From contig JAHLWZ010000813.1 of NCBI GenBank assembly GCA_020536535.1, positions 54,158 to 118,157 on the forward strand: a DNA stretch of 64,000 nt, written 5' to 3'. The position numbers were made by a program, and so were the translations under genes. The notes beneath the pieces were generated by a model. It did not search any database and was not told the DNA's origin. It worked only from the letters and a program-made list of their open reading frames with translations. This stretch comes from Pelomyxa schiedti (Eukaryota; Protista; Evosea). Below, piece after piece: positions 4,333 to 38,300 of the stretch (the stretch's first letter is position 1; every line of letters starts with the position of its first letter).

Positions 4333-7300
4333 TTACACTTTGGAACTATTTGTGGGTTTTACTGATTTGGGGGTGGTACTGCCACTACCCCACGAGTGCA
4401 AATTGTGGTGAAGGTTTTGTACAGGTTCTTCCAGCTCAGGGAATACTTTATACATAGAATCATACAGCGGTCCGACAACAAACTCGTTGAAAGCGCTCTG
4501 TGATGGAATCATTAGTGTTTTGGTGACCATAGATAATTAAATGTCTATCCATTAAGGTGGGTGTATCAACACAACCTGCATTTTTGGTACATTACAATCA
4601 TCTCTTTTCATGAAAGGGGAAACAGGAAGCCCAGCGCTTCGCTCTTTATCCCCTTGGGAGAGGAACTCTTCTACTACACAATGTGCCCACTTTTCACAGA
4701 TTGTCCAGTTTCGTGCTGAATTGGCGAGGTCGGCACATTTGATAAAAAGCTTGAGTGCCAGTAGCCTGGAAGTACTATCTGTGAATTTCAACGAATTTTC
4801 GGCTGTTGCGGTGCTAGACTTCCACATTCCAAGCAGTTCGACATGACTAGGTAACGTGAACAATAAAACCTAAAAATAAATTTTACCGAGACATATCAGT
4901 AGCCAGAACTAGATTAATAACAAGAGTGCGGAATTCGCGAAACCTAAGTTAGTTGTTACTTAGAGACCTGATTCAAATAAGGATACATTTCTTTGGAGAA
5001 CGAGGCTGTAAAATTCATGTCGGGCTGTTCGAGAAGTTGGAACGCTGTGGAGGCATGGAAATTCTCCAGGATAGAAATATCGTTATAGGTCATGCTGAGC
5101 TTAGATTTCGTGGCTGCTGGGAAGTTAAACTTGATTGGTACGGAACGGAGGAAAAAATACCAATAAGGAAGTTATTGTTAACACCTTGATAGTCGTCAGA
5201 TGTAAGGAAACATGAAAATCAAATACCAGGATGCTGTATATCATGAACAACGGCAGAAAATAATGCAGCAAAGTGTTCCATTGGAGTCAACTGCAAGACA
5301 CTGCCACATTTGGTCAGAAACCAATTCATCGCTTGTAGCACGTCACAGGCGTGATTCTGGGGTACTGATTATTTTTAGGTTTTTCCCCTTTTTATTTTCC
5401 TATCCTAACCTTATTGTGATACGGGGTAGTGATATAAGACTGATCCGCGGCATAGATGTAGTTATGTAAGTGTGTTGGTGATATTGCAAGGCTTTGAAGG
5501 ACTCCGCTTTTGTTGAACAGATAAGATGAAGCCTGGGCCAGAAGGGGGCCTAAATCGGTACTTAATGGGATGTCAATTACGCGTGTTTACCTTCTATTCC
5601 CAGTGGGCAAAAATCCCAGCTTTCAATTTGTTGTATTAAAGCCTGGTTGGGTTCCCCCTGCTGCCTGAATCAAAGGGAAGGAAGAATTAAAGAAGCAATC
5701 AATTGGACTAAAAGATTACAAGGCTAGGCTTCCTTGGACGAGAGCAGGTGTAGATAAAATAGGTACTGAGGTCTTGGTTAGAACTTGATCATAAAGGTAA
5801 TCCTTGATATCCGACTCGAGTTCTGTAAATTAATAAGTCGAAAATAAGTTGAGTGAAGGAGACTCCCCACCTGTTACATTACTATAGTCTACACTATACA
5901 TCTTGCGGGAGGTGATGATTCCTATTGCATATGCTAATGTATGGCTCTGCCGTGGGGATACATCTAATGATATTAGATCTATGTCCACTAGTTTGGGTGC
6001 TCACATTCTTTCAGTGACTCTAGGGCGCGCACAACACTTTCAGCAGGAGTACTGAGTAAGTCTCCTGGAGATACTCTTTGGCCGAGAACAGACTGCAAAT
6101 GCACGTTCTGCTCTTGAAGTTCGTCATTCACTTTAGCCATTTTTTTCTGATGGAATTGAGTTTGGTAAGAGTAAGGAAACGCAATACAAGTCTCCTGATC
6201 AGAAATAGTGCGATAGATAATAAGATGACAATGATTAACAATGACCCCAACGTTGGGGGCAGCCAATACACTAGATCGGACTTGGACTTGGTTGTACGGT
6301 ATTCTACAATAAACCCATTCCCAGCAGTTGCATAGTCAGTGATGAACACAAGCAGCACATGTTTTGAATAAATCGTCAGTGGCAGTGAACCGTAGCCATT
6401 GAGCAAACCAACAACAGCTCCATATGTCCCATTTTCGTCAGATAAGCGTACACTGAGTACATCACTCTCTTCAATGTAGAGAGAAGGAAATGTGAGAGTG
6501 ATTGCATCAAAGTCGCCCTTAGGGGATATCAACCACGAGCAGTAAACATTTGCCACATAGGTCATTGCCATCCCCTCTGGAGGGTAGTCACTCTGTATAG
6601 TGCCACTTGATTCTTCGACTACTACGTGCCCACTACAGCCTCGAGAACAGTCGTACCAAAATCTACCCAAGGCACAAACACATTCAGAGTTTACACAGTA
6701 TCCGTGTCCTTGTGACAGTCCGCATTGATTTGCCCGAGTGGACCCACAGGTAGCGTTTTCGGCCCCACAGGAAAGCCAATCTGAGTACTTTAGCACACAG
6801 TACACTAAACTTGATAGATACCTTTGACGTGCAATGCACTTTGAAGGAGGGTTAAATCTATGTTTGTTGTTTTTACTGCACGAAGAAAAACATAAGGAAG
6901 GGAAAATAAAGAAGGTAGATGCCTGTTGTGAGCACAATGTAATAATCTCCTGGAGGGAAGAATGCCGGGAGAACATGTTGCCCCTTCACATCAATGTCAC
7001 TATCAATTCTCTCGCCTACATCATGTAGTTTGGACCAAGAATATAAGTACCTTCCTTTTGGTTAGAGAACGAGTTTGATTTGCGGCTGTTAACCTCCAGT
7101 CCAGTATCCTATCCCCGTGGAAGATAGTATACCACGCCCATAGTGCGGGAAGCATAAGATCATACAAATTTGCACTGTGCAATATTTAGAAGGGTAACGC
7201 AGTTTTTTGTAGAGAGATACGGAACAAAGAAAGTCATATTGAACTGATCTTGAGGGCATATAGTCGTTTCCATTGAAAATTGTAACCCACAAGAAACTCC

Positions 7301-8094
7301 AGCCCAAGGTTCTTCACAGTCACACCAACCAAGGAGATCGTTGCACTCTCCATGGGCACTACAATAGCTTGTGCAACTTGGCTGGTAGCACTCCCAAGTA
7401 AAAATAAACTCCACACTGTGAACATTAACGCCACTGAGGCCAATCCCCTCACCAGCCAAGCTACTTGAATTGTCCGTAGCGAATGTGAAGTAGAGATTTA
7501 AACCAACAGTAGCCCGTGCAGAACAAGCAACAGTGGCAGAAAAAGTGGTTGGAGTTTTGGGTACAGTGCCACTCAATGGAAGATCCACAGAAGCTGTGAA
7601 ATCAGATACGCCCACGGTATTTGACTTGGAGGAAACAACCACACGATCAGAAAGATACTATGCTATGGTGTCAACAAATACAGCAGAAGGAGGGGCCAAA
7701 GATTACCTGATATTCTGTGCTGGTGTTGCCTGTTGACGAATCCCACCACCGAAAATAGATAGTAGGGTATGGATAGTTGAAATGAGGAGCATAGAGAGTC
7801 ACGTTTTCAGTCGAGAATTCTGGCTGGACTTGGCCACACACAACCACATCCTGGAACACTCCATCTTCCTGTTGTGTTTAGTTTAACAACCCAACAAACT
7901 AAAGGACAAGATAGGAAACTAATAGAATGAGGAGCAAAAAAGGGAAAAAAAAAAGGTCGAGTGCACTCAACTACATTTCTAATTTGCAGAGTCGGACAGG
8001 AGGCAATCACTCCCCGGTTAGTCAAGCCATTATGGGACGCGGCCGCGTGCAGCACCCACACCGCTACGAGCACGCACACGCCGAGACCAACCAT
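4333..8094 (-). CDS. Single-pass receptor-type class I cyclic nucleotide PDE: signal peptide, EGF-like, EGF-like, CUB, TM, coiled coil, PDEase_I
   Basis: Signal peptide MVGLGVCVLVAVWVLHAAA. EGF motifs CSAHGECNDLLGWCDCEEPWAGVSC and GHGYCVNSECVCALGRFWYDC. CUB SSGTIQSDYP..YVANVYCSWLI..GNGFIVEY. TM LPPTLGSLLIIVILLSIALFLI. Spliced PDE motifs YHNKNHACDV, HDIQHPGVNNNFL, ENFHAS, LATDMS, KCADLAN, EEFLSQGD. Confidence 0.85.
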
Positions 8095-8366
8095 CAAAAC
8101 TACGTGTGGCAACTTGTACGACCTCAGAAGGAACTGAGAAAAGAGCAGACAACGCAGAAGAAACTTATGCTAAATGGGAAAACTTCAAACATCCTTTCTC
8201 CAAAATAGGGAGTTCCTAGTGCTCTGGCTTGATGCAGATCATTCTGCGCGACGATCAATCCCCGAATGTCGTTTTGAACACTTCTTCCGCTTGCAGAATT
8301 TCGTGAACAAGCACTTTCTCTGCTTGTAATTTTAAGTTTGTGTGATGTAGCGGAATGTCTATCAGT

Positions 8367-11007
8367 TCAAAGCTTTTTGCCGACGGCGAACCACCTCGGA
8401 ACTTTCTTAGTCGGAGGGATCCCTGTGGGAAAGTGTAAGTAGCGTAAGAGAAAAGTGTTGTGAGTACCCGGAAGTTCTTCAACTTCATGATTAGCAATGG
8501 GCCCAACGTGAACTTGCTTGTTACATCGTGCACAGAGGTGGGCGTAGCAGCTCTCACACCAGAGGGTTGCTTCTTGGGTGGTGCAGTTCAAGCAACGCTT
8601 TACCGCCGGATCAGTGGAGGCGGTGATGCTCCTGGCAGAGGCATTCGAAGTCGATGCAGATGGTAGTGGTGTGTGTGTGGAAACAAAATGCTGAGCAACT
8701 TGCGCATCGTAGCTCCAATTTGGGGGTAGTTTCTCTCTGACATTGGACATCAAGTCCTCCCTTAGAAACGGATGTGATACCACTGATTTATAATTAGCCT
8801 TTGTCAGGAAGATGAAATCTTGCTTACAAGAAGGATTTTTCCATTTGAAATGAATCAAGGCCGATGGAACAAGGCCACGCTTTATCAAGTTACATTCTGG
8901 ATCTCCTAGTTGTTCCACAGGAGGTGAGGTAACTGAGATGTTGTGAGCTATTTCCGTTATTTCATTGACATAGCATACAGAGGATAAACGGATGTTCAGG
9001 GTGAGCTAAACAAGTCTGTACAAATTCGAATATTGATTGCACGTTGGCTCGTGGATGAAATGCCCGTTCTATTTCAATGCGATCAGGGAATCGGACACGT
9101 ATTTTGGCCTGGATGCCCATAAAAAAAAAATGCTTCAGAGTCCGAGTACCTTGTCAAACTGACTCCATTTTCTCATTTCCTCCCTTTCCCGTATCTCTCT
9201 TGTTTTGAGAACTGCACGGTCAGCTTCTGCTTCCCTGCGGGACATCAGTTCATGTTCACGAATGCTATTGAGATCTTCCGCTGTGATTTCATAGAATGCT
9301 TCAGGGATCTCCACTTTTTGTGTTCTTGTGATTAGCTTATGCATGAAAACAGGCGGTTCGGTTAGTGACAACTTACAAGCAGAAGGGTTGAATGGTGTAT
9401 CACATGGTGGGTAAACAGAAACAGTTTTGTCACCTTCAGGTAGATCAAAAACAATAGGCTCGGAAATCCCCTATCAACATAACAAATTTATAGAAGGGAA
9501 TGTCCTACAAACCGACGAGGCTGTGTCTTTTGCAGAAATTTTAGGTGCCTTTTCATGATGTTAAAAAAAAGGACAAAAGATATCGGCAGTAAGTCACCAT
9601 GCTGCCAGAATTTCTAAGAGAATTTTGCTGAGCCTCTTGAAATATGCGAAGCTGTTCGGCATCACTGTTTGGATGGTCAATGCTTCTTCAAAGTTCATAT
9701 GTGTACCGGGCAGCTTGGTCTGCAGCAAGCATCATTTCATAATCCCTTCTTTGAATTTCTAGTCGAGTTGCACGCTGCCTGGCCAGTTCAGCTTGGAAAG
9801 CCTCACTCTCAGCCTGCTTACGTCTTGCCTCACCTTCAGCTTGTTGGATCTTCATGGCTTCTTCAGCTTGTTTTCTTCTAGTTTCAGCTTCAGCCAAGGC
9901 TTTTTCTTCACGAAGACGCTTGGCCTCTTCTTCCACTTGCCTCCTAAGAGGTACCATTAGATGCAGACGTTGTTCGCATTAGCTCACCTTGTGGTTGTAT
10001 GTTGATGTTGAGTTATACAAACATTTAGGGAGCTTAATTACAAACCGAGCTGCTTCTTCCTGTGCTCTTTGCTGTTGGGCAACTTCGAGATCGTGCTTGC
10101 GCTTTTCCTCCTTCGGTTTGATTAGGATGATATGAGGAGGGAAAAAGGGTAACTAAAGCAGCTTTTTCAGCTTCAACGAGTCTTTTTTGTTCTTTTTCAA
10201 TTTCCACAACTTCTTCAAATGATTTCCCAGTCGAGCGATATGTCAATCTTCACACGCAAATATTAAAGTAAGTAAGAACAAAGGGGGAGAAGAACTCTTT
10301 CTTACCTGAGCAGGACAGAACCTGATGAAATGCCCAACTGCTGTAAAGTTGTACTCTGAAGAACTAGTATACCCCCAACCTGGATGCAAGTGAGTATCTT
10401 CTTACGCACAGAGAAGCAGGACCTCGCGATTCATAAAGTACAACACAGGCTGCAGATAAGAGCCACTCTTGTCAACCATTTTTGCCAATGAAGGTTGTGA
10501 AGGACTTGCACAAAGGTTCAAGATGTCCCACAATGTTGCCGAAGAGGGTGTCGAGACGACAACACGATCTCCCGATTCAGGCTGGATTGCCACGACCACA
10601 GGCTTCCCTTTTTCTAGTTATCAGGGAAAAAACAACTCAAGAGTGAGGGTCGAAAAACCAGCAGTAGAGCAAGGAGTCAGGTCCAGAGTTTGACCAGGGG
10701 CCAAGCCAGATATACGAAAAATCAGAGACATATCCAATGGCTTCCCGTTCTTGCTGCATCATTTTTTTTTTGGTTTGGTTTGGTTTGTTTAAACAAAACA
10801 TAACGCAACAAAAGCGCAACAGCAAACACGAATCCCAAGACAAAGAGAGCGTCCCAGATCTGAAAAACAAACGCACGACAAACAGTATCCCGCAGGCTGC
10901 AGACCAAAATTCGAGCACGCCGAGTCCCGCACCTGCGACAAACTAGTTGCGGGCGTAACTTTGACGGAGTAACGACGCCCCCCAAACACCACCGACAACG
11001 TGCTCAT
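8367..11007 (-). CDS. TUG/ASPL (ASPSCR1)-like UBX protein with a C-terminal B-box zinc finger
   Basis: N-terminal UBL1 (RRYSVKVTPATSLSQVRDSAC), second ubiquitin-like segment, coiled coil, UBX (IRVRFPDR...GLVPSALIHF), B-box CLNC..C..C...C..C...H.....H, C-terminal VPRWF. Confidence 0.78.
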
Positions 11008-11130
11008 CTTTGTCTTTGTTTTGTTGGCGGAATGAAAGATCTCTCAAATTTGTGTTTCGTCTTTTTCTCGGTGTTTGGCGGGTGATTCATCACTTCAATC
11101 AACGGGGGCGTGAGGAGGCGCAGGGGAACG

Positions 11131-12222
11131 ATGTCACTGGAGGACTTGCCCGATTTGATAGTTACACTGGTGGCGGAGCGGTGCATTCCTGCGTGGCTGG
11201 TTTCTGGGGTCCCTCCTCGTTCTATTTCTGTTTCTTACTGCGTGGACTACGCGCACCGCGGCTGGCCCCTTAGAGATGTTGTGCGTTTTGGGGCCACGTG
11301 CCGCCGGATACACTCTATTGTGGGAGCCAGTGACACGCGCCTGTTCAGGCCTCTGGCTGTTGGACTTTTCAATCTTGATGCCTCCTTAAAGGTTTTGCAT
11401 ACAATAGGGGTTTTTCCTGTAAACCTGTTTTTGTTATTTAATTCTTGCAGCCAAAGGGATTGACTTGGCTCCAAGTCTGCAAGCATTGCATTCTGAGGGA
11501 AATAAGTGGTGTATATCGTATGTGGACTATAGTCAAACAAATTAATTGGGATATAACATATGGCTGGCTGCTCAACCTTCAGACACCAGAAATTGTGAAT
11601 GTACAATAATTCGCACTCAATATCCCTTATCCCTTGACATTTAGTTAAGTGCACAGAAGAAACACCCTTGATTGGGTCTGGAAAGTTCCACAACCAAAAG
11701 TTGATGAGCCGGGACTTCGATGCAGTGTTTTCTGGTACAAGGCTACATGAGCCTGATTCCCCATTGCACTCTCTCCACCTGAACTTTGGAACCACTGCAT
11801 GCAAGTGGGTACCAAGTGATAGCACCAGCTTTATAGATGAATCCACATTCACCCCATACTTTTGCCCGAGACCTAATGAAGAAGCCGAGCTGACATGGAG
11901 ATTCCATGGAGTTTTTACCAATGATTACCATGCGCGGGATGGCATAGTTCATGGCGTAAAACTGCTCGATGACACTGTATCTGAGTGCTGTGAGCGAGTA
12001 CAAATTAAGGCCGCATACGAGTGTGAATTCCAGCCAACTGTCAGCTTCCTTGTTGGCAATGCGTACTTCCAGGTATTCTCTTCTTCTCTCATATGATTCT
12101 GATAACAAATAACTGTGGTTCAGGTGCACAATTGGTGCCTTGTGTACAATCCCGATGATCGTCTTGCTAGGTGGGTACCACACACAAATGTCTGTTTTCA
12201 AACAAACCAAGAACACCCTTGA
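11131..12222 (+). CDS. Hypothetical protein with an F-box-like N-terminus
   Basis: MSLEDLPDLIVTLVAE...LRDVVRFGATCRRIHSI resembles a split F-box. GT-AG introns link the ORF pieces. Confidence 0.5.
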
Positions 12223-12349
12223 CGTAGTTTCCTCGAATACCGGGAAAGCACACAAACAAAAAAAAAACAACCATTCCCACGTGCAACACTGGATTTTTGT
12301 TGGTTTTTGATGAATTTGAAGATCCCACTTACTTCCTTGAACAACAAAA

Positions 12350-15638
<3,289 letters not shown>

Positions 15639-15679
15639 TAAGAACAAAATACAAGTACTTTGATATTTCCCTTTCAACT

Positions 15680-17800
15680 TTACTTGCGTTGGTTCCAGCT
15701 CAGAACAGTCACAAGCGAATGGACCCAGTCCTTATCCTCGTCATCCTTGCAAACAGAGGGCACAGGATATGGACACTGTTCCACTCTCACAAAATCGGGT
15801 GTGTTGAGTTGGATTGATGGCCGGCCGTCTATGGTCGCTCGTGCAACAGGGCAGTCATCAGGTACCTTTTGTTGACACCCATGTGGGAAGAAAGGGGAGA
15901 AAATTTAGTGTACATTCTGGAATTTAAATTTTATTTTAGATTTTTTTTTCCTATGATATATTCACGTACTTAGTAGTGTAGTAAGGAGTTGTTATTCATG
16001 TGGTGGAACATACGTGAACTTCGAGAACAGAGTGTGATGGGAATATGATGGGCCGAGATGCCAGGGTATGAGGTGCCAGGAGTGTCATAGTGATTCCATT
16101 TACACTTTGGTGAAGAAGAGGCCCTCCGGCACTGAGGTTGTATGCTGTGCTTCCAGTGGGAGTACATATGATCACCCCGTCAGCTTGCACGTGAGCAAAC
16201 TCCACCTGATCACACAGGCAGGTGAGTTTGGATAGTCTCATGTGCTCGGGATGGTCAACAACCTTGATGGAAATTAGAATTAATTGGTCTGTGGAGCTTT
16301 TTGTTCTGCTTTTGATTTGGTTTGGGGGTTGGTTGTGGAAGAAAACGGTACCACTTCATTGAGGAACGAATAGGACGCCGTTGTTATTATGCCAGTCTGT
16401 AATAATCACGAGGTGAGAAAAGTGTAAGAGTCAACAAAAAATGGAATTGAACCGGTGTTGGGTGCATGACCGAGGCTATGAGTCTCGCTCGGAGAGACAT
16501 TTTCATATCCGCGTTGTTGGTGAGAATTTTTGCTGGGGTGGAACAAATTAAGTAATGTCTCACTACAACACAGTAGAATTGTACTTAGAACTGGTTCATA
16601 TTCCGTTTGCTCATGTAGAGTCAAAAACCCTAGCGTGCCTCCTCTGAAGCATACCATTGGCGGGACTCGTTTGGGAAATATTCCTTGTGCCCACAGCAAA
16701 GTCCCTATACGAGAGTCAAATGAACTGCATTTACACTTGACAAATAATTACCATCGCCACCAAGGCATACAATGAGATCTACCTGTCAGAACATGTTTCG
16801 TCAAGGGCGAAGGTGAGAAAACCTACTTACTTTTTCTGCAAGGTCTTCTCCATCAATCCATGTTCGCAGTTTTTGTCCTCCAAGTCTTGAAAGTAGTTCT
16901 TCTGATCTTGGCAGCTCCTCGCAGCACACTGCCCGTTCGACGATAACCGTAATTCCTTGAGCAAGTAAACTGGAGCATATCCCGACAAAGACTCGTACTA
17001 CTATGAAATGTGAACGGAATATTAACATAGTGGCAGCATGCTATGCCATTTTGAAACGAAATGGAATGAAATTTCAGTATTGTACATTGTTCATTGCTTG
17101 GCTTCTTGATAATCAAGATGGTTCTTGGGGAGTCACTCCATTTCCAGGTAACACTACTGCTGCTCGGCCGGCTTGGATCCGACGGGGTGTAAACAACACC
17201 CCTCGCACAGGGAAGATCGGCTATTCCGTGAATGCAGCACCTCGCGGCACACGGCGGAACGGCGCTGGTGAGAGGAAGAGAGCCCGATGAATTCGTACGC
17301 AGCGACGGGCTCGGCGAGGTCGACAGCGAGTTGAGGCCAGGAATAGTCGTCGGGGAGCCAGTGGACAACATGTCGCCGGGCAGCATGAGCGGCCCTGAGT
17401 AGGCCATCATATTGGCAGCTATCAAAGGTGACAGGCTCCCACTGGGGACACCGGAACCACTTGAAGAGCTGGCAGCCGCGCTGGTGCCAATTGTGGGAAT
17501 GCAAGCAGAAGCGGTTGAGAGTGCGGGACTGGTGGGGGTTTTGAAGCAAGAACAAGCGGTTGTATTACTACCAATCGGCACAGATTGAATGGCACATGAC
17601 GATGATGAAGAAGTTGTGGCGGCTGGAGGGAGTTGTGATGTTGTTGGTGTTTCGAAAGTAATTATGGGAGACGAACAAGATGACAATGAAGGTGACAACA
17701 CGGGGGTCACGTCTCCTCCCATAATTGTTGAGTTTGATGTGGTGTTGGGGGGAGTTGTGTTGTTCTGTGTCGGTTGCGTGTGCGACTCCGGGTTCGTCAT
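15680..17800 (-). CDS. NADK: NAD kinase with a Ser/Thr-rich N-terminal extension
   Basis: LGGDGT, GTLGFL, NE motif, ADGVIICTPTGSTAYNLSAGGP, APHTLASRPII, terminal LSWNQRK. Start at 17800 or 17722. Confidence 0.92.
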
Positions 17801-17997
17801 TTTCGTACTTAGTTATTTAATTTTTCTTGTTTTCGGTCGCGAACTGGGATCAGGCCCGCGAACCGTTTTTTTTGGTTTTGTTTGTTATTCTGGGTTTTTC
17901 AAAGGAGATGGTAGGTACAAAAATAGTGGACTTTTTTTCCAGTGCTGGTTGGTTTGAGATGGAACTTGTAATTCCATCTATAAGGGAAAAAACACTA

Positions 17998-21422: not shown

Positions 21423-24036
<2,614 letters not shown>

Positions 24037-24472
24037 GCTTGGTGTCTGTAGAGCTTCTTCCACCTTCTGGCTTGGGCTGTCCGGTAGTTCTCCTTTTTCT
24101 TTTGGTTTTATTGCCACTGACCTTGCAAAAGAGGTCCCTCAAGTCAGATTTTGTGCTTCCACAAAAGACCCTGCCAATAAACTTTTCAAAAGAAAATACA
24201 CCATAAAATCGCGTGGTGTTTGAAACTCAAGTGTTTCTTTCTCTTCCGGAAGCGAATTGGGCAGAGATCGTCTGCCGACGTGACGCGATCGTCGCGTTCG
24301 CACGAACAGCCGCTTTTTAATTTCTTTTTCGTACGATACAGCCCGGTTCCGGTAGAACTAAAAATAAATAAAACGCAATAAGAACAACCAAAAAGAAAGA
24401 AATCAACCCGTTCTTCTCGAATCTAAGTTTTTAACTATCTCGGCTCTAAGCCCAGTTTAACCTTCCACAGGA

Positions 24473-25567: not shown

Positions 25568-25848
25568 TAAAGTTTAAAAAAAAACATGTTATTGTTCCAT
25601 TGTTTTACAGGGGATTCAGGATCCAAGTTGGGTCCTTGTGGTTCTACGGAAAAAACCGTATCAGATACGGGAAAACTTTGGAACCCTTTTATCTTCTCCC
25701 CTTCATCTTTCTTTCTACCCTTTGGAGAAAACACGTACCTATCACCTGTGGGTAAAAAAAGTGTGTTTTGGTAACCAACAGACCAAAATCTTAGCTACAT
25801 AAAGGGCTTGATTGTTGTAAATAGAATGCAACATTGCGTGGTGCCTTA

Positions 25849-26659
25849 TTATTTACCATATCGTTTTTCCCTTGTGAAGTAAAGGTGATTGATGTGCTGA
25901 AAGTCAAAAAGGCAGAAGTGCTGGAGGCTCGGCTGCCAACTGTTGTTGATTATTAAATGACTTTGTATGATTTGTTTGTTGGATGGAAAAATGGTGGCTT
26001 GCACATACAACAATTCTGTGAACCTGAGGTGCCATGGGAAAAAGTCAGGTAGGCTGTGGATTGTATCAAATATGATTGCAAGCTCGGGCTCGGTCATAGT
26101 ATAATGGCCAACTGTTTTACTTGTGTGAGAAGATATATAGCCACTGGGGAAATTGGGTAGAATTGGAGAAGGTTGATAGTACTAATAGTGCTATTCGATA
26201 TGTGCTTTACTGTTATGTCACAAGCGGGAATGAGCACAAGTTTTTTTGTTGCTTGCACAATTGCACCCTTTCCATCTGATGGAGAAGTCACATGAATTAG
26301 ACAGGCCGGAGCTGGTAGTTCAGGGACAGTTGGAGACTTGGCCGCTTGTTCTCCTTCAGGGGGTGTGGCTTCTGAAGGGGGGAGGTCTAGTGGTTGTTCC
26401 GAAACTGTGCTGGTTGCACAGTTGAGTTCATAGCTCTTCCATTCAGTGTTGAACACAATCCCGTGGTTTAGTTCAGGGACACTCTGGTTTAGTTTCTCTT
26501 TTTAGATACCGGTTTTGAGAAACAGAGGAAAAAAAGAATAAATACTTGTAGTAATGGCTGGACACATTCAATCAACTTTTCAACATGTGTCTTCAACAGA
26601 CCTGTCAAGTACTGTGAGTGCATCCCCTGCTGGAAAAAACAAAACCAAAAAACACACAG

Positions 26660-26699
<40 letters not shown>

Positions 26700-26700
26700 G

Positions 26701-26738
<38 letters not shown>

Positions 26739-27292
26739 AAATACGAAAAAAAAAAAAAAACAAAAGAATATCACATGGACCAATAAACGCCAACCAAAAA
26801 ACAAACAAGTCCTTCAAACCAACCTTGCACATCCCACAGGGTCACGTTCCTCACACCCATGCCGACGGCATGCGAAACCAACTTGGCGGCGCCCGCCAGC
26901 ACCTGGTCCCTGGACCCGCCCCCCTGCTGTATTATGAACGCCACGTGGCGCAGCGTGTTCTTCGCCCCCTCCGCGCTCCCCCCGCCTGCCGCCGCCTCGG
27001 CGCGGCTCTTGGCGCTCGCCCCGGCCCCGTCTGCTGCGGCTGCGGTGTGTTGCTGCTGCTGCAGCGGGGTCGTGGTCGTGGTGGAGGGGCCCGGCGCGAG
27101 GTGCACGCGCAGGCCTGGGGCGCGGGGCCCGAGGGCGCAGAGGGTGAGGCGCCAGGCGAGGAGCGAGGCTGAGTCCCAGAGACCCACGAGGGCCGCGAGG
27201 AGTCGAAGAACGAGCACGTAGGCCGCGAACCCAGGGCCCCACCCAACGTATCCCACACCGTGCCCAAGCCCGTGCGTTTTCCCCCCGTGCAT
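25849..27292 (-). CDS. NUS1: NUS1/Nogo-B receptor, cis-prenyltransferase accessory subunit
   Basis: Hydrophobic N-terminus, LRHVAFII, GVRNVTLWDVQG, SPSDGKGAIV, EPELAIIF, DFFPWHLRFTE, C-terminal RxG motif (EKRYGK). Confidence 0.88.
26660..26760. repeat. About 100-nt near-pure poly(A) tract (poly-T on the coding strand) inside NUS1 intron 1
   Basis: Directly visible homopolymer runs with few interruptions. Confidence 0.95.
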
Positions 27293-27549
27293 TATTATTC
27301 GGTACGTCGAATCACCTGAGCGCTGGTTCCCCTTTCCCGATTGACTTGTGGGATCCCCAGAGTGCAACCCAGAGATAAATGGTGGACAAAAAAGCTCAGG
27401 AAGCACAACCCGTTGTTGAGCAGCAACTGTCTGTGTTCAATCATCACTGAACGTCCGGGATCTCAGAAGCCCGGAACAATCAAATTAATTTTTTTTGAAG
27501 ATACCAGGCGGGAAAGGGGGTGCGTGGCTTATTTGCACACAAAGGGGGA

Positions 27550-30500
27550 ATGTCGCAACAACACTCTCGCAGCAATAGTGGTAGTGGTGGTATAAACAAC
27601 GGTAGCGACGGCGGGAGCAGGGCCATCGGCGGAGATCTCGCGTCCTCGGGCGCAAATTCGGCCGCAGCGACACAGTTCAGAGATGCGGCAACGGTAGTCG
27701 TGAAGACCGTTATGCTACTGCGGGACTTATTCAACAAGGTTTCCTTCGAAACCTATTTTGAGGAGAAAAATCCATCTTGTTTCATTTGTAATCCATGTGC
27801 TAAATGCCGAATCTTTTAGGAGCCTTTACCTCTAAGTGATATCAAACTGGTGGTAAACAAAATTGAAGAGGCCAGCACTGCTTTTGCCAATGCTGCTGCT
27901 GCAGTCAACATGGAGATACTCTCACTCCCTCATCGGTTATCGAATTTTATTTCCTCTTTTTCTGTTATTGACTTAATAATAAGACCTGGTGGAGTCGAAC
28001 AACTGGAGAAATTAAATCAAATTTGCCAACAACTGAAAGAGAAAATAGATTCCATTGTTAGACTAGCACGGGTTCCTTTCCCTTCGCCGTTTTAAAGTAC
28101 CCATTCCTAAACACTAATCGTCCAGCCAGACTCTGCAGAAACCCGAGCTCCTTGAAGTTGCTGAACTAATGAAAAAAGCCTTGGAGATTGTTAGCAACTC
28201 GCTACCGCCAGCTGTGTCACCCCCACCCTCACACACCACAAGACTTTCCAATTCAACGCCTTGCCGAAATTCTGCGCAGTCACCTACACAGCAACCTCCT
28301 CCAAATACTGACACCACCCATAAACGCGAAAACTCTGTATCACAATGCATTCCTCCTATGCCCATGGCGAATTCTCCAGGATTATCAGTTTGTACTACTT
28401 TATCTGAAATTCAGTAACGAAAACAGACAGAAAAGCAAGACTCACAACAACAACAACCTGTGCCATCTGGGAATTCAATTGACTCCACACAGAATGCAAC
28501 CGTCAATCGTCAGGTAGCACTATGTAAATAAACACATCCACCTTACCCCAAAGTTAGGTAATCACTCAGGTACAAATGATTTACATACAGTAAAACGGTT
28601 CACATACATAAGGTCATTGAAGACCTAAAATCCAACAATAAAGAATTCAGCTTTATGTGGATGCAGATGAGCCCCGATCTCCAAGAAAACTTCACGAAAA
28701 CACTTTTTTCCGTTGTCAATAGTGCAATTGTACGACACCCTACTTTTTTTCCCCTGTGACTTCTGTAGGCGCAAAATTCTGCTTCTACATCCCTCACAGC
28801 TGCATCAATTCCTCGCGCCAACGTAATTTCCCCGATCACGCTTGCTGCAAATCAAGATGAAGTAGATGTTGATGACTCAACTCAGTAACACCCCACCACA
28901 CCAAAATCAAATTCTCATTTTTCAGAGACTTGGAAGCGCACCTTAGGAGCGGTCATCTTCAGAGAGTAATTACAAGGTATAACATATCTCAAGAAATTCG
29001 AAGGTACTCATATTTGAAGAAATAAACTTGGGTCACTTTCTACCAACCATCAAGGTTTCAGTAATTTGAAGGAAGAGTTAGTTAACTCAAAAACCTAGAA
29101 ACTGAGTCTCCGGGAATGGCACTCAGAGATACAATTCTCCGCATTTTGGACCTCTCAGGTTGGATTACACCAAAGCCCATGGAGAAATTAACTTCGGCAC
29201 ACCAGCAAAAATTGGAGACCTTGTGTTTGGCACAGCTATGAATGCCACAGCTTGCATTGCTGAACCACGAAATGAAGATAAAAACAATAATGTTTCTCCC
29301 GCCTTTTCGTTTGCATCTAATTCCCCTCAGTTTGAAAGCGCTGTGCAATCCTCCCGCAACACCATTATTAAAATACTAGAGTCATGTAGAATTAAAGTTA
29401 CTTCCGAGATAAAAGAAGGAGAAGGCTGTGATCTAACCGCTATACTGGAGGTTAGGAAGGAAAAAAGACTCACCCAATTAACTTTATCACAAGGTTTTTG
29501 ATAAAACGGTTAGAGACATATCGGAATCTACTGTGAAAGGAAAGCCCGATACCACTGTTGATGTTGGTCCAAATACACCTCCTCACAAGCAGCAACTCAT
29601 TGAAGGTGAGATTGAGAAACAGTGTTTCTACTATTCCAATAGAGTCAGGTTACCATTTTCGTCTGTAGGGATTTTTAACTCGATGTCTTCAGAATTCACC
29701 TCTGCCAATTCCTTAGCATCGTCAGTGCGCTATGTTTTAAAATATCAACTTCAAGTTGGCTTCTCGAGCTTTCTGCTACATCAATGAGTTTTGTAAATGC
29801 CATTACACTTCTATCCAATTGTGTTGCTACCGCTCGAGCGGTTTTAAGTCAGAGCACAGGTAAGCAAAATGTTTTTTTTTTGTTGTTGAAACAAATTTTA
29901 GAGAATCCAATGGACGCTGTATCTACCACACCCTCCGTTCCTGCTCGGCCATTACAGGAACTGATAGAATCTGCCGCAATTCCAAATGACATTCCCCTTT
30001 GGGAAGAACTCACAGCACCCCCACCCTACCAAATTTTTCCGCCGCACGAAGTCAAGGCAGCAACTCTCAATAAGCTGGTAGAGTTGGCCACATCTTGCAC
30101 ATTTCATGGTATTGTTTTTCCCGCAGACAACTATCGGAGTCTAAAAGACTTATCCACTCCAGATGCAGCCTACTTGAAAACGTTTGTGATAATGTCTTGC
30201 TCTTTCACTACACCCTCGAAGTTATTCTTAAAACTCATTCAACGGTCCGTCATTCGAACTCTTTTTATTTTAATTCCTACATTAAATCTCAAGTTACGAA
30301 GTTCCACCAGAAACTGATCCGGCATTAAAGACTCTTATACAGACGCGTGTTCTTATTTTCTTGAAGGTACTAAGCACTCAATGTTTTCTTTTCCCATTTA
30401 GCCATTTTGAGTAGTACTGGATAGACCATCAATTTGACGAAATGGATGATACGCTAATTCGAAGGTAGGGGAAGCAAGTTGAAGTGGACTTATTTCCTCA

Positions 30501-31646
30501 GGTTGTCAGAGTTCGCAGATCGACTTCTGGCAGATGGGTTGGGGGCACAGGTTTTTAAATCAGATTTAGAATCCAAGAAGAGGATGAGAATGTCGAAAAT
30601 CAAAGACCTCTTGATTCCACATGTTGATCTCGTTGTAAGTCTCTGAGAGGTGAAGCCAACAACCGACCCCTTTAGATGCCTCAGGAAAAAATATCTCCCA
30701 TCTCTTACATATTGTGTATGAGCAGTGAAGAAATTGCCAAGCAATTAACTCTCATCGACTTCGGGATTTTTCAATCCATCAAAGTGTTCTATTCTCGTTT
30801 CTCATTCATCTCTGACTCCGAACTCAGCCCAGTGAGCTTGTAGATAAAGGGTGGACCAAAGAAGGGAAGAACTACAGATCACCCCATGTTGTACAAATGA
30901 TTGAGCGCATAAATAACTTTTCACTCTGGCTGTCACAGATGATTGTGTTTGAACAAAACCAAAAGGTCAGAGCAGACATTGTCACCAAATTCATGGAAGT
31001 GTCTTGTGTATGCTGCGTAACTTGCCATTCAAAATATAAATTAAGCAAAACCCAGTACCTGAAATCAATCAACAACTTTCATACACTGATGGCGGTAATT
31101 GTTGGCCTCAATCAAGCAACAGTAACACGACTGAAGCAAACTATGGCACTTGTTCCGGAGAAGACCACAAAAAAGTGGAAGGCTGCAGAAAGTGTTATGG
31201 ATGTAAATGGAAACTTCAAAACCTACCGGAGCACATTAACTCAAGCAGCCGGGCCAATACTTCCCTACCTGTATTTCTTTCTCCCTTTTCCTTTGCACTA
31301 AATCAGCTGCAGGATTGTTTACCTGAGTGATCTCACGTTTATTGCCGATGGTACTATCCATCATCATGCATTTATCTTACCAACAACAGGTAATGCGGAC
31401 ACTGTTAATAACATGATAAATTTCGACAAGCGGTCTATGGTTCACCAAATCATTTCAAAAATCGATGAGCTGCAACATAATCCCTACAAAGGATTTGTTG
31501 TATGTGAGCCACTGAACACATTTCTTTCTGAGCTTCCGGCCCTTACCGACAACACACTCTATAACATCAGCAAACTCCGCGAACCGCCACTCCCCACAAG
31601 TTCAGCAACATCCAAAACCTCGTCAAGACGGAAATCCGCACACTAG
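27550..31646 (+). CDS. RasGEF (REM + CDC25 domains) with a long helical N-terminus
   Basis: VKAATLNKLVE, YLKTFVI, EIAKQLTLIDF, NNFHTLMAVIVGLN, GNFKTYR, PILPYLGLFLSDLTFIADGN-like segment, MINFDKR. Confidence 0.9.
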
Positions 31647-31739
31647 CATTGAAGCTATGAAACTGTGCATAGCATAAGGAAAAAACCCAAATTTTGATTT
31701 TTTTTTGTTTGTGTAGATACAAGTACAACACACAAGAGG

Positions 31740-34700
31740 TTATAGGGTGGAATGAGCAGAGAGCAAAGAGGCCAATTGAGGAACCACATTGGAAAAGCTT
31801 GGCCTGTTTTTGGGGTCTGTGGCCCAGCACTGCTGTGTCACATTTATCCATTCAGTTGGGCAGTCAGGTGGAAAAACAGGTCTCACTCCTGCAGCCACTT
31901 TGATTGGAATATCCCAGAATACACAACCATGCCATGGGTCCGACCTGGTGTGTGATGTCATTTATACATTTATATGGGCCAGTGCTGTATTGTAAAAATG
32001 CATTGTACTGTTTGGGAGGAAACCTTGTCCACAGTTCCCACAGGCAAATACCAAAACTATACACGTCTGCTTTGTGATTGTATGGCAGCCTGTCAAATAA
32101 CTCTGGGGCCTAAATGTCATTAATCTCAAGGCCGAAGTCAGGGTGCATTTTACCATGAAAGTTGGAGTTCCAACCCCTGTGGTGAAATCCATCACTTTTC
32201 CTGTAGTACGGTCATAAGAGAAGATCGAGTTCACACAGGCGTAAAACCTGCATCTTCAACATCTCTGGAGGTTCCGAAGTCTATTTTTTCTTAATACGCA
32301 AGTAACAAAAGGAGACCAATTACCTGTAAGTTTACAGCTCACAGGTGCGTGTAAGTCCAGAGAGACTAAAAGTACATTGTCACATTTCAAATCTCCTAAT
32401 AGGATATTAACGCATTTCGGAGCTACAGGAATCACAGCACTGTACAGAACGTTATTGAGGTGGAGGTACTCCATTGCCTGAGCGATATTGTATGCGAATT
32501 TGAGGTGCAAAGGATACACCATTTCTTTATCCGACTTTAGAAATCTCTTCAAACTTCCGTTTTGAATGAACTCAGAACATACGCACAGTTTATCTTGGTT
32601 TGTTGAAAAAGGGAAAAAAGTTTAGATATCCCCAACCTGGAATGCAGGAGGCACCAATGAATTTAACAATGCACGGATGATGAAGTCTATTCATTATCGA
32701 CATCTCCTTCCTGAAAGCTCGAATATCCTTTTGTTGAGTCATAATTTTTACTGCCAGTATTTGTGAACGGTATTGTCCCCTATAGACACTCCTGTTCAAT
32801 TCCAGGTAGATTGTAAGAAAACTCCAGGGAGAAAGGCAGTACCCAAAAGATCCGGATGCCAAAGGCTCAGGATCCACATTTACTTCTTCTGGGTCGAGCC
32901 ACTCAGAAATGGCACCTTCAACTTTAATTTGAATCCATGTGGAACAGCTCTTTGTACCACTTCCAAATTCAATTTTAATTGGGTGCTCAAAGTGGGTAGT
33001 ATATTTCAGCCGGAAATGAACATGCACGTGTATACTACTTCTTGAAGGAACGCAACCTTTTCCTGGAACACAGGACAGGTCAACAACTGGATTTTCTTCA
33101 GGAATATACATGCAGTAAGGCATGCAATGACTACTCGAATTCCTCAGCTCAATATCGTCAGTGACTTCCTGGCCAACAGGACACAATTCGGAACCAAGTC
33201 CGAAATCCAATTTCTCCTTATCAAGTGACAGACCTTGCAACATGCATGAATCGTCTCTAGGCATTTTAGTCTTGTCAATCTCCTCTATAGACATAATTGC
33301 TATAGTCTCTGCCCCTACTCTAAGTGAAGCCTGCGCTGCTCTTCGCCTCTGTCTCGCAAATAGAAATACTCCCACGCAACATGCACACAGGAGAAGGAGA
33401 AACAAAAGTGAAGCAATTCCAAAAATCATTCCACGCTCAGCTGGTGACAGTGGTTTCTTTCTGGCATGGAATGTGAGTGAAAATCCCCGGGCAGAATTTT
33501 GTGGAGATGTTGAGAATTCCACCAACATTCTTGGTGAATTGATTACTACTAAGCGATCTTGTATATCTGTTACAAATGACACAATAAAATCTCCATATTG
33601 GCCGTCTTCAGTAGCGTAATAAAAAGACAAGCTCTCCCCCAAAAATGCAGTAAAGTGTATGAGAACCTCCAGTTCGTCATATTTGCTGGAACTTGATGAT
33701 GCATCAACAAACCACCGGCATATAATTCCATTCAGGAAATGGATCTGAGAAAAACTCTCAGATGGGATAGAGTCATTGTAGTAAGCATCGCTATTAATGG
33801 TTCCCTCAGAAGAACCTATCACAGATGAATATGCTGAGCACCCTCTGCTGCAGTCAAACCAGTAGTGACCACCGGAACATACACACGTATTATCACCAGA
33901 ACAAACCCCGTTTCCGGTTTCTGCATGGCAGGTATTTCCAGAACCCTCTCCACAGGAGGAAGTGATGTCACCCCAACATGTGGGGTAGTCAAGAACCTCA
34001 AACTACAGGCCACATATAAGTACGATTTAGAATTGATCCTCTACTACCGTGTCAAAGTAAACCTCAGAATCTACAGAAAGAAGATAGAGGTGATAAAAGC
34101 CAGGAACGAGGAAAGGAGTGAATATCTGAGTCATTGTAATATTTTCCATTGTGAGATCTGGATCAACCCCAGTAGAAGAGGCCCATCGCCACTCAAGTAT
34201 GTCTAAAGTTCTAGATAGGGCAATAACCATAGAATTCGTCACACCAAAGTCATTAATAACCTGCCTATGGAGGTGTGAATTTCTTTGAAGAAATTATGAA
34301 TAAAGAAGACCAACGGAAGGAAGTATGACACAACGAAATCCTCACCCGGGCATAACTGCCTCGGAAACACAAAGTTTATATCACAGTTAGCCATGGCCCA
34401 GTTGTCTTCACATACACAAGCTCCCCATTGACAATATCCGTGGAGGCAGGGATCACAGTCACTAGGAAAACAACCTTCACACTCCCATCTAATAGGAAAA
34501 TGAGAGAAATGTGAAATCAATGTGAAAAAGGGAATGACCGAACCTGAGGACAAACGAGTACTCTTCAAATAGTACGTTGATCCATTCCGAGTCATTTCCC
34601 ATCATACTGCAACCAAAAGAGAACCTCAATTCCACAGCCAGTATGTAACTGTTTCCCAGATATACAGTCAGGGTCACATTTGATACCCCAGAAGGTACCT

Positions 34701-35196
34701 TCCCCCCAACAGGCATTCCCTCCACTTCCACATAAGGATACAGAGTTTTCCACACTCCAGAAAACATCTCTCTATAGTAGTTGCTCTGCTCAATAAAAAC
34801 TAGGTACGAAGCGGAACAGTTGCAAACCAGCTCTGTGCTATTAGAACCCCATAACTCCAGTGCCTGGTTTTTATCTGCCCCCCATGCCCAGTCCAGTGTT
34901 ACCTCTGGGGAATTTTGGTCAAAGTGAACCACTCTCTCATCGCTTCCAACTTCATCACTCACAAAGTCACTCTGCACAACACCACATTCCGCAACTACAG
35001 CACCAACCACCTCTTCTGTGGCTTGTGATTTCCCAGCAGTGTCAGAAGCCCTCACAGTGGCTGAAAATCCAATGCAGCTGCTACTGTTACCAACTTCAGA
35101 CTCACTTGCAGCACCAGGCACAATCAACAATAGGAACACATGCCAGAATAGACACATAGTAGACCAGAAGTTTACATTAGGGGCTGCCAGCAACAT
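31740..35196 (-). CDS. Single-pass receptor TKL kinase: signal peptide, EGF/EGF/CUB ectodomain, TM, Ig/MSP-like juxtamembrane domain, kinase
   Basis: Signal peptide MCLFWHVFLLLIVPGAAS, EGF and CUB motifs, TM MIFGIASLLFLLLLCACCVGVFLF, ASGSFG, AVK, spliced YRDLKCDN, DFG, GTPTFMAPE, DVYSFG. Start could be 35157, 35196 or 35253. Confidence 0.88.
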
Positions 35197-35383
35197 CACC
35201 TGGCGTTTTTGTTTGGTTTTTAATTGGCCTTGATAAGATCGGCTCAGAACCATTTTTAGGTGTCAATCCCGTACACGGAACACGGGAATTCGAGATTCCA
35301 GTAATGCAGTTAGTTCCTTCCAGGATAGTACTAGAAAAACTGAAAACGAGGCTTGTTTGTTGGAACACGGCACTGCATAGCAA

Positions 35384-38300
35384 ATGTCGTCATTGTCGAG
35401 AGCAGCAGCGTTTCTGCTACTGTTTTCCAGTCTCATTTTTGGCATAATTTGGGGCCAGTCAGAAGACTTTGTACAGCCGGCACCGCAACAACATAATTAT
35501 GGAACGAGGAGTGCAAGATATACTACGTCCGGGGAGTACTGCCTAAATGTGTGGACCACGGTACCAGTCTACGATGGCCAGTGGCCACCATCGATTGTAA
35601 TGACGTACGACTACCCCGTCGTGGACTGTGGCGTCGTGGGCGCGACATTTCAGGAAGATTTCAGGGGGTACCACTGTTTCCCTGATTTCCCACAACTGCA
35701 ATTCGTGTGGTGGCTGTCGCCGGTGCCTCCTGCGGGTAACGTGAGCGAGGTGCCTTCGGACGTGTACTTTGCGGAAGACGAATTGCACGTATTAAAGTTA
35801 TGGGACGCAGTAGAAGGATCACAACAGGACATCAGGCAAGTTGTTTTCTTTTTTATTTTTTGTGAAGACTTGAGTTTGTGTAACAGGCCACATTATGTAG
35901 GTCTTTTTTCACTGTCTCTGGTCTTGAGGACACATCAGTGGTACCTAGTGAAGATTACCCTGGAGAGTTTTCAATTTCAATGACCTGTATGGAAAATGCA
36001 CTTGTTGCAGCTTCTGTGGGTATCTCGTTCTCAATGCCGTCCCTGGAGCCAACTCTTCCTTCCTCCACTTTTTTCTCCGCTAAATGGAGGTGCCTGCCCC
36101 CTAAATGCACTCCGGCTTGTGAGTTGCATGGCTCTTGCATTGTTGGCACTTGCTTCTGTGATGATGGATGGCACGGTACTTCCTGTGAGATATTCATTGC
36201 TGTAAACTTGCTGTTGTGCCCAGGCGATGAAATAGTTTTCAACTATTCTATTCCGTGTGTTATTTTCGACTCCTTCTCTGTCTCACTTCCTATGCAGGAT
36301 GGAGATTGATGGTATTCCTGGTGCTGGAAACCTTCTTTCCTATGTAATTGCCTCCGAGTGGCTGATTGATCAAAGATATTTTTTGACTTGGAGCATCACA
36401 ACCCCATATCAGATAGCGCCAAATTGGAATCAAAACTACTCTGGGATTGGAATATCCCCCGCCTTCTTATCCCCAGGGGTCTATCTGATGAACTTGCTAT
36501 CTTCCAGTGGGACAGTGTTTGAAACATTGTGGTTTGAGGTTTTTGGCTGGGAGGAGTGTGGTTACTATGACGCAGTATGTGGCTCAGGTTACAGCAACGA
36601 CTGTAATCTAGACTCCAGCAGAGGGTACTGCGACTCTACTTACGGGGAGTGTAATTGCTTCTCAGGAAGTTTCTGGTACGACTGCAGTCGTGGATGCCCA
36701 GATGAGACTGTGCACCTGACAAACTCAAGTGCTGAAGTTTGGTCAGATTATCCAGTTTCTCACCTCTACAGTGATACAAGATTGGTGATTCAGAGCCATT
36801 GTTCTTGGCTCATTGAGCCAGCGAATGACTATGACGAAATCATCATTTCCTTCCCCTACTTCAAACTTGAATCAGGGACACTGACTCTCGAGACTACAGA
36901 AGGCGAGCTCATTGGATCAGTATCTGGGGACTCCCCCGCACCGTTCATTGTCGGAAAAGTAAAAGTGTTCATCCAATTGGATACTATCAGGTCAAGCTAT
37001 GGGTTTGTATTCAACTACACCACAAGACAAGTCCCTCTTTCCGCAGTTGCAAAAGCGTTCATCGGCGTGGCTTCCATCTTTGTTGGAGTCTGTATCACTG
37101 CTGGAGCCTGTGTAGTTGCTCTCTGTATCGCCAGGCACTTCAGAAAACGAGCAGAATTCTTGAACAACCTTCAAGCTGAAACCCTGGAACCTCTGTCTCC
37201 TCAACAGATTGAGGAGTTTGTGGCATCAAGCAGTTCTCTTGATCACCTTGGGATTCAGATTGACAAAACTCGCATTCGATTCGGTCTTGAGGATGGGGCC
37301 TCGTGTTCCATAGGAAGTGAATTGTATGAAGATTTGGAAATAGAGAACCGGTATCATCCTTAACATCCTGTCATGTTTAAAATTATCCCTGTGACAGGTC
37401 AGGGGGGATGATTGCTTATTCTTTGTTTGCTCCAACTCAGCAAAAGGGTTTGTCAATCAAAATAACTCCAGGCCGTGGTATCATACCCAGTCACACTGCA
37501 GTAACAATTTCTATTGAAGCAACGATGAACTTCACTACACACTTTTTCAACGTCCTCAGAATTGATGCATACAATGTATGGTCTCTTAAAGAAGCGATTT
37601 CATTGTGGAATACTCCTCGTGAGGAAAGAACAGCGATGGGGTCTGTGTGGTTACCCATCAATTTGGAGGGCTCTCTATCTGATAGAATTGACCCAGAAGA
37701 AGTTTTTTTAGAACCCACTCTTTTTGCTGGGGCAGGTTATGGGTAAACAGACTCGCAAGATTTTTTGGACTTTCTCAATACTTCAGGTCAGTATTCCGCG
37801 GGATATATAGATCACAATCAGTTGCAGTTAAAATCCCAAACCATCAAGAAGGATACGGTGAAGCAGAGATGAGGCATTTCGAGAATGAATGTGCTTTAAT
37901 GAAACACCTCAAACATCCTTGTATTATCTCATTTATTGGTGCTTCCCATGTGAGAGGTATTTACTTCTATTAGTAGTTCAAATCCATTGAGTTGTGAGAG
38001 GAAAACTTTGTATTTTGACGGAACTGGCCGAGAAGGGCACTCTTAGTGACTTCCTGGAATCTAGTGCTTCCATTTCCTACTTCCTTTTGATCAAATTTGC
38101 ACTTGATATAGCACAGGCCATGGGATTCTTGCACGAGAACAAAATCATGTTTAGTATGTTATCTAATGCAATATGAGTGTTTAACCCCAAAACAGGGGAC
38201 CTAAAATGCAGCAATGTTCTCCTTGTCTCCACATCAGAACAGTCCCCCGTGTGCTGCAAACTAACAGGTAGAATTTGGTTACTTTTATGTAGTTACTGCT

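Follow-up and report, generated by a model that had tools for sequence, protein, structure and literature searches.

Textbook receptor enzymes make second messengers or add or remove phosphate, and in two well-known groups, the natriuretic-peptide receptors (guanylyl-cyclase and clearance forms) and the receptor tyrosine kinases compared with the receptor phosphatases, one type of ectodomain is found on different cytoplasmic parts. Class I cyclic-nucleotide phosphodiesterases (PDEs) can also be membrane-bound, as in Dictyostelium Pde4, which has its catalytic domain facing outward and degrades extracellular cyclic AMP (cAMP). We know of no described single-pass receptor with a cyclic-nucleotide PDE as its output, and no description of one was found in the literature searched. 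The nearest described fusion of a sensor with a PDE is Rh-PDE of choanoflagellates, in which a membrane sensor is linked to a class I PDE (PMC7644710), and the genome paper of the archamoeba Mastigamoeba balamuthi goes no further than to mention that guanylate cyclases and PDEs are expanded (PMC8136499). Here, a stretch of 64,000 nucleotides from the free-living archamoeba Pelomyxa schiedti (contig JAHLWZ010000813.1, positions 54,158 to 118,157 of the forward strand; hereafter the window, on contig C813) was analysed, with a focus on a gene for a receptor-type class I PDE and two genes for receptor kinases. The three genes probably belong to a lineage-specific family of type I receptors of free-living Archamoebae, in which one and the same ectodomain is carried on either a kinase or a PDE output.

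The ectodomain consists, in order, of a WIF-like beta-sandwich, an EGF domain (EGF1), a small beta domain, a further EGF domain (EGF2) and a CUB domain. Behind it, most members have a membrane helix, then an Ig-like domain in the cytoplasm and a tyrosine kinase-like (TKL) type kinase, whereas the C813 PDE and the paralogous gene on contig C828 have a helix, a juxtamembrane helix with a linker, and a class I PDE domain. The PDE gene was modelled as follows:

8094-4333, minus strand: receptor-type class I PDE gene on contig C813, 18-exon model
8094-8011, 7868-7707, 7657-7221, 7174-7094, 7050-6923, 6875-6822, minus strand: PDE exons 1-6
6780-6188, 6146-6005, 5963-5871, 5822-5720, 5664-5591, 5549-5410, minus strand: PDE exons 7-12
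5356-5227, 5184-5161, 5113-4987, 4943-4887, 4846-4576, 4497-4333, minus strand: PDE exons 13-18
7707-7868, minus strand: exon 2, first half of the WIF-like N-terminal domain
7221-7657, minus strand: exon 3, second half of the WIF-like domain and EGF1; its last two bases open a Pro codon
7175-7220, minus strand: intron 3, 46 nucleotides, GT-AG, phase 2, in the Pro codon after EGF1
6822-7174, minus strand: exons 4-6, inter-EGF beta domain, with introns at 7093-7051 and 6922-6876
6188-6780, minus strand: exon 7, EGF2, CUB and a single membrane helix (about 6250-6190)
5410-6146, minus strand: exons 8-12, juxtamembrane helix and conserved linker into the catalytic domain
4333-5356, minus strand: exons 13-18, remainder of the PDEase_I catalytic domain

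Exon cores were placed by conservation with the C828 paralogue, and splice sites were picked by frame and by length match to the Mastigella and Mastigamoeba proteins described below. The exons total 2865 nucleotides, a multiple of three, giving 954 codons and a stop; this protein length was obtained by arithmetic, and the exons were searched singly. Least certain in the model are exon 1, which is tentative, and the junctions around 5720/5664 and 5161/5113. Introns in this region are tiny, mostly 40-55 nucleotides. The exon that follows intron 3 restores a segment conserved in the family, the reading frames of exons 4-6 are conserved in the C828 paralogue, and the intron at 6922-6876 (47 nucleotides, with a GC donor) is the sole frame-preserving junction between exons 5 and 6. 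Exons 8-12 are conserved with both the C828 paralogue and the Mastigella eilhardi transcript P0053.

Exon 2 shares 48% identity with the corresponding exon of the C828 paralogue, and exon 3 gave EGF-type matches in Pfam together with a weak WIF match (E 0.0077). The CUB domain (PF00431) scored 34.5 bits on one exon against a Pfam cut-off of 21.4, and the catalytic domain (PDEase_I, PF00233) scored 83.9 bits on one exon against a cut-off of 24.8, with more exons matching in a genome scan. The metal-binding His and His-Asp motifs and the Asp of the catalytic pocket are present, distributed over exons 12, 13 and 16 and across junctions, and all are kept in the C828 paralogue. The solved structures nearest to the catalytic part of the related M. 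balamuthi protein P0146 are PDE4D, which acts on cAMP, and PDE9A, which acts on cyclic GMP (cGMP); their scores on P0146 were equal, so that similarity does not call the substrate as one or the other.

The predicted PDE product has a signal peptide, a cysteine-rich ectodomain, one hydrophobic helix and a class I PDE domain, in that order. In all three genes hydrophobicity peaks at the N-terminus and once after the CUB domain, and basic residues follow the helix. The PDE and both kinases are thus predicted to be type I single-pass receptor enzymes, and the PDE catalytic domain would lie in the cytoplasm, given that a signal peptide and a cysteine-rich ectodomain precede the helix and basic residues come after it. 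No rhodopsin domain was matched in the PDE by Pfam, and only the one membrane helix is present. Between the two PDE paralogues the non-synonymous difference is 0.30 in the ectodomain and 0.17 in the cytoplasmic part, compared with synonymous sites that are saturated at about 0.77, and the two copies are old duplicates retained by long-term purifying selection.

The C813 assembly and sequencing run X4 differ across the PDE gene by three substitutions and three short deletions (6752, 6978, 8017, 5389, 7945 and 8123). Two of the substitutions are exonic; another cell, another strain or sequencing error may explain these differences.

The two receptor kinase genes with which the PDE was compared have the following features:

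31740-35253, minus strand: receptor kinase 1, NCBI model P0063, 3' end approximate
35253-34544, 34488-34315, 34264-34048, minus strand: kinase 1 ectodomain exons
34002 to about 32600, minus strand: kinase 1 exon with EGF2, CUB, the membrane helix (33417-33355), the cytoplasmic Ig-like domain and the start of the kinase domain
34265-34314, minus strand: kinase 1 intron, 50 nucleotides, GT-AG, phase 2, in the homologous Pro codon
35384-39022, plus strand: receptor kinase 2, NCBI model P0066, 3' end approximate
35384 to about 37060, then 37067-37129, plus strand: kinase 2 ectodomain, then its membrane helix
36255-36297, plus strand: kinase 2 intron, 43 nucleotides, GT-AG, phase 2, in the homologous Pro codon

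A preliminary description of this DNA, made from the letters alone, had proposed that the ectodomains of the PDE and of the two kinases are homologous and colinear, and this was borne out by exon-wise BLASTP, by profiles built from kinases only and by a multiple alignment. The EGF2-CUB exon of the PDE matched that of kinase 2 at E 1e-26 and that of kinase 1 at E 3e-17, and the EGF1 exon matched at E 1e-12 and 1e-8, respectively. A profile built solely from kinase-linked paralogues matched PDE exon 3, which holds the region before EGF1 and EGF1 itself, at E 4e-37. The same profile matched PDE exon 2 at E 0.0056 in a database of 7329 open reading frames (ORFs) and at the colinear profile position; few of these ORFs could hold the upstream PDE exon, so the effective significance is much higher than this value. 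The inter-EGF profile, also from kinases only, matched PDE exon 5 at E 9e-4 and the exon of the C828 paralogue at E 1e-3. The alignment of sixteen full ectodomains from database proteins starts in the N-terminal domain and stays colinear as far as the membrane helix, and the EGF2-CUB junction has a signature that is specific to the family and nearly invariant. Since the kinase-only profiles match the N-terminal and inter-EGF exons of the PDE, the similarity extends beyond the cysteine patterns of EGF and CUB domains, and the observation of a shared ectodomain stands.

The intron reported in the same Pro codon of all three genes (7220-7175, 34314-34265 and 36255-36297) was found at each place as a GT-AG intron that splits the codon after its second base. 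It is, however, no special bond between these three genes, and in this respect the interpretation had to be changed. A pattern scan found 25 distinct copies of the family, every one with GT after the second base of the Pro codon and with an acceptor 39-94 nucleotides downstream that restores the conserved segment; kinase 1 makes a 26th copy. NCBI models of three members splice at this intron, namely those of both window kinases and that of the one paralogue whose ORF runs through the site, where an in-frame 51-nucleotide intron is excised at these bases. An environmental relative (L029) has a 39-nucleotide GT-AG intron in the same Pro codon, and two Mastigella transcripts are continuous across the junction. 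Presence in 26 of 26 family copies tested, and in the environmental relative, makes the intron an ancestral mark of the ectodomain gene family; as such it supports common descent of the PDE ectodomain exons. The environmental relative lies on a Logan contig (run ERR12015700, 3001-5079, 39% G+C) and encodes the same ectodomain, a helix and a cytoplasmic Ig-like domain, followed by fragments of a kinase; its in-frame 39-nucleotide intron had been read through by gene calling of the prokaryotic type.

A search of the 52-Mb P. schiedti assembly with a profile of the EGF2-CUB exon gave 34 genomic matches, corresponding to about 29 genes. Twenty-seven loci were fetched, and the output was read where the flanking DNA sufficed. 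Downstream of the ectodomain lie kinase exons, except in the two PDE genes and at one or two loci that are cut off or unclear, so that by this count about 27 kinase genes and two PDE genes carry the ectodomain; neither a cyclase nor a phosphatase was seen as a partner at the fetched loci. The exons of the C828 PDE are 55-80% identical to those of the C813 PDE. Family kinases often stand in tandem or divergent arrangement in this assembly (G000), with four in a row at C747:11900-27100 and pairs at C805:81800-86300, C193:42400-47400 and C300:5900-10200.

The cytoplasmic half of the PDE likewise occurs with other partners. The Mastigella linker matches three places in the genome, namely the two CUB-type PDEs and a PDE on contig C291, where a different and unrecognised ectodomain comes with a membrane helix. 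A PDE on contig C721 joins an NMT1-type binding domain and a helix to the same cytoplasmic region, and in precomputed Pfam lists dCache_1 and OpuAC domains precede related P. schiedti PDEs. A second PDE in the window itself (P0160, 44681-48356, minus strand, 871 residues) combines a different ectodomain with a single membrane helix and the juxtamembrane linker of the CUB-type PDE. The ectodomain ORFs tested from the C291, C318 and C812 PDEs and from P0160 gave no Pfam match. The NCBI protein for the C721 PDE (P0171; locus L030, C721:38500-44500) is 1655 residues long with many unrelated Pfam families, and looks like an annotation fusion of adjoining genes.

One ectodomain type on two outputs points to a module swap, and the recurrence of the helix-linker-PDE cassette with dCache and solute-binding sensors makes module swapping well supported. 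With the cassette found behind many sensors, and the WIF-like/EGF/CUB sensor in front of many kinases, the CUB-type PDE is the intersection of the two sets. The proposal that the ectodomain was swapped between a TKL kinase and a PDE is therefore upheld by about 27 kinases and two PDEs with the ectodomain, and by the PDE cassette behind other ectodomains. A phase-0 intron (6187-6147) directly follows the PDE exon that ends with the membrane helix, a position that would suit exon shuffling.

Relatives of the fusion were found in two further genera. In M. balamuthi P0146 (969 residues), EGF and CUB stand on a single protein with PDEase_I (E 1.6e-73); the M. eilhardi transcript P0053 encodes the ectodomain and membrane helix, joined to the PDE-type linker, and ends before the catalytic domain; and Mastigella P0002 is a kinase with the same ectodomain. 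The fusion is old, as it occurs in Mastigella and in similar form in Mastigamoeba. In a tree of the EGF2-CUB region the two Pelomyxa PDE copies pair with support of 100/97, and these, the Mastigella PDE, the Mastigella kinase and the P. schiedti kinases on contigs C1151 and C863 group together with 91/87; the window kinases fall elsewhere, and so does the Mastigamoeba PDE, on a long branch. A tree of the region up to and including EGF1 has a similar topology with weak support. By its ectodomain the PDE is closer to the C1151, C863 and Mastigella kinases than to the two kinases of the window. A single fusion in the common ancestor of Pelomyxa and Mastigella is well supported.

Structure models were made, from a 16-row alignment, for the ectodomain of the Mastigella PDE orthologue and not for the C813 protein. 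The orthologue is confidently modelled as a string of all-beta domains with a mean predicted local distance difference test (pLDDT) score of 87.6, and its CUB fold is confirmed by matches to the CUB domains of TSG-6, neuropilin and C1r at template modelling (TM) scores of 0.75-0.79. What had been described as an N-domain, together with the stretch before EGF1, forms one domain in the model (pLDDT 92.6). In Foldseek searches of the PDB the top six matches of this domain were all WIF domains, at E about 2e-5 and with a gap after them. A search independent of Foldseek placed WIF domains at Z 10.4, 10.2 and 10.1 over 127-130 residues, with the next fold at 8.6. In the ESM Atlas, the top four clusters were all WIF families (TM 0.63-0.69), including RYK-type kinases and WIF-1. 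The N-terminal domain is therefore predicted to have a WIF-type beta-sandwich fold over its whole length, an assignment that is new here. Sequence support for this fold is weak though consistent: the Pfam gathering score for WIF (PF02019, 25 bits) was not reached by any of 19 members; six gave sub-threshold matches (best E 7.8e-5), the first member at 16.9 bits, and the best PDB sequence for the family profile was WIF-1, aligned across WIF and EGF1 at E 0.054. Because these matches lie below threshold, the domain is named WIF-like and is not filed as a WIF member.

Several points weigh against the reading of the three genes as one receptor family with two outputs. Similarity in the N-terminal and inter-EGF regions is weak in pairwise sequence, where a single-sequence comparison gave no match for the N-terminal exon, and becomes convincing through profiles, colinearity and structure; in a wide profile search, moreover, the top places were filled by animal multi-CUB proteins, which scored above family members. 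Such results would be expected if the PDE and the kinases had independently gained a generic EGF/CUB cysteine pattern and the intron match were due to chance. This is nevertheless highly improbable, as kinase-only profiles match PDE exons that are neither EGF nor CUB at colinear positions, the domain order is identical from the signal peptide through to the membrane helix, the EGF2-CUB junction carries the family signature, and the Pro-codon intron has the same phase and codon throughout the copies tested. The only matches to the full profile in a single stretch were family members, and these full-length matches were mostly P. schiedti kinases. A different doubt concerns the gene itself, which might be a chimera made in assembly, a pair of neighbouring genes or a pseudogene in decay. 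Its splice model is comparative and requires one GC-AG intron; the four sequencing runs that hold the region are genomic and contain no splice joints; and an annotated protein for the EGF/CUB PDE was not recovered in the three protein searches that were inspected for it. Word-indexed searches with the L021 ectodomain and with the Mastigella orthologue did not find it, and one with the Mastigamoeba cytoplasmic part recovered the other PDE of the window. Against this, each of the four runs spans the whole gene in one contig, all exon frames are preserved in the C828 copy, whose amino-acid divergence is much lower than the saturated synonymous divergence, the 18 exons add up to a multiple of three and showed no stops in the frames read, and a Mastigella transcript and a Mastigamoeba gene model bear the same fusion, so that an artefact or a pseudogene appears quite unlikely.

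How often the fusion arose is a closer question. The ectodomain trees are poorly resolved, and both place the Mastigamoeba PDE apart from the ectodomains of the Pelomyxa and Mastigella PDEs; in exon-wise catalytic-domain scores P0146 was not singled out as the match of the window PDE exons, and it is not their best Mastigamoeba match. Separate origins of the ectodomain-PDE fusion in the Pelomyxa/Mastigella lineage and in Mastigamoeba, by recurrent shuffling, are therefore a serious possibility, which we regard as somewhat doubtful: support for the branches in question is low, the Mastigamoeba PDE sits on a long one, and a single clade of the four PDE ectodomains was not rejected by the approximately unbiased (AU) test (p 0.22). 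The function of the ectodomain is also open to another interpretation. Adhesion and contact with the matrix are common roles of EGF and CUB domains, and control of either enzyme by a ligand, like any sharing of ligands, is hypothetical. The ectodomain might accordingly serve only in adhesion or in membrane placement of a constitutive PDE. This seems unlikely, on the indirect evidence that the PDE cassette is also joined to dCache and solute-binding domains, both of them sensors of small molecules, and that the juxtamembrane helix and linker are conserved across receptors, as would be expected of an element that transmits a signal.

Under the preferred reading of a receptor family with one ectodomain and two outputs, recombination near the membrane helix would have placed an ectodomain of the kinase family on a pre-existing receptor-PDE cassette, at a point where the phase-0 intron now lies exactly. 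An outside ligand would bind the ectodomain and would probably shift the geometry of a dimer, a change that may be relayed through the single helix, the juxtamembrane helix and the linker to alter PDE activity and hence the breakdown of cyclic nucleotides. The kinase paralogues would answer related ligands by phosphorylation, so that related outside signals could drive two inside responses. Heterodimers of kinase and PDE members, as raised in the preliminary description, are speculation. A broader synthesis would take the N-terminal domain as a true WIF homologue, so that RYK-like receptors of the form WIF, helix and kinase would be older than animals; Archamoebae would have connected the sensor to a PDE as well, and kinase and PDE paralogues would read one, possibly lipid-modified, ligand in parallel or in mixed dimers, coupling phosphorylation to a fall in cAMP or cGMP. 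Taken as a whole, this chain of proposals is something of a long shot.

In both kinases the catalytic Lys, the catalytic Asp and the DFG motif are intact (P0063 and P0066), and PK_Tyr_Ser-Thr scored 191 and 169 bits. Their best solved matches are CTR1, DLK, TNNI3K, LRRK2, ZAK and TAK1, and both were assigned as putative TKL-type kinases by profile, motifs and nearest solved relatives. The cytoplasmic Ig-like domain between helix and kinase is of the ASH/PapD/HYDIN type (about 32700-33300 and 37400-37750) with weak Pfam matches to CFAP65 and HYDIN, and occurs in most paralogues and not in the PDE members. The NCBI model of kinase 1 (P0063) begins too late to include the signal peptide or the first half of the N-terminal domain. 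That of kinase 2 (P0066) seems to omit about 37408-37746, which would encode the end of the Ig-like domain and the glycine-rich loop; the reading frame stays open there, and the sequence can be aligned with kinase 1. The two kinase genes lie head to head with start codons approximately 130 bases apart (35253-35384), so that a bidirectional promoter may be common to both. Elsewhere in the window, positions 1-2000 have a G+C content of 0.58, compared with about 0.44 in the remainder, and contain long overlapping open frames on both strands.

The occurrence of the same ectodomain on a kinase or a PDE, within one genome and across three genera, constitutes a natural experiment. It poses the questions of how one helix passes a signal to two unrelated enzymes, whether outputs can be exchanged by design, and whether anaerobic amoebae pair phosphorylation with second-messenger clearance, and the WIF-like domain raises the question of the origin of the animal Wnt-binding module.

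With respect to that module, the family resembles WIF-1 in that a WIF-like domain directly precedes an EGF domain, and its kinase members resemble RYK/Derailed/Dnt in the layout of WIF-like domain, membrane helix and kinase. RYK is a pseudokinase of the tyrosine-kinase group, whereas the family kinases are TKL-like with intact catalytic residues; unlike RYK and WIF-1, the family also has the extra beta, EGF and CUB domains, and its similarity to WIF sequences is below the Pfam cut-off. No relevant paper on WIF domains outside animals was found in the literature searched, and to our knowledge amoebae are without Wnt. Among PDEs, the C813 protein shares its single-pass topology, juxtamembrane linker and catalytic cassette with other receptor PDEs of P. 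schiedti and M. balamuthi, whose dCache, OpuAC, NMT1/THI5 or Venus-flytrap sensors are bacterial-type binders of small molecules, whereas its own cysteine-rich sensor is common to a large kinase family. By design it is like Rh-PDE in that an outside stimulus would act directly on cyclic-nucleotide breakdown; Rh-PDE is multi-pass and senses light, whereas the C813 PDE has one helix and a large extracellular domain of the protein-interaction type. It differs from Dictyostelium Pde4 in the predicted placement of its catalytic domain in the cytoplasm, and from the natriuretic-peptide receptors and the receptor tyrosine kinases and phosphatases, whose outputs are a cyclase, a kinase or a phosphatase, in that the output here would be a PDE.

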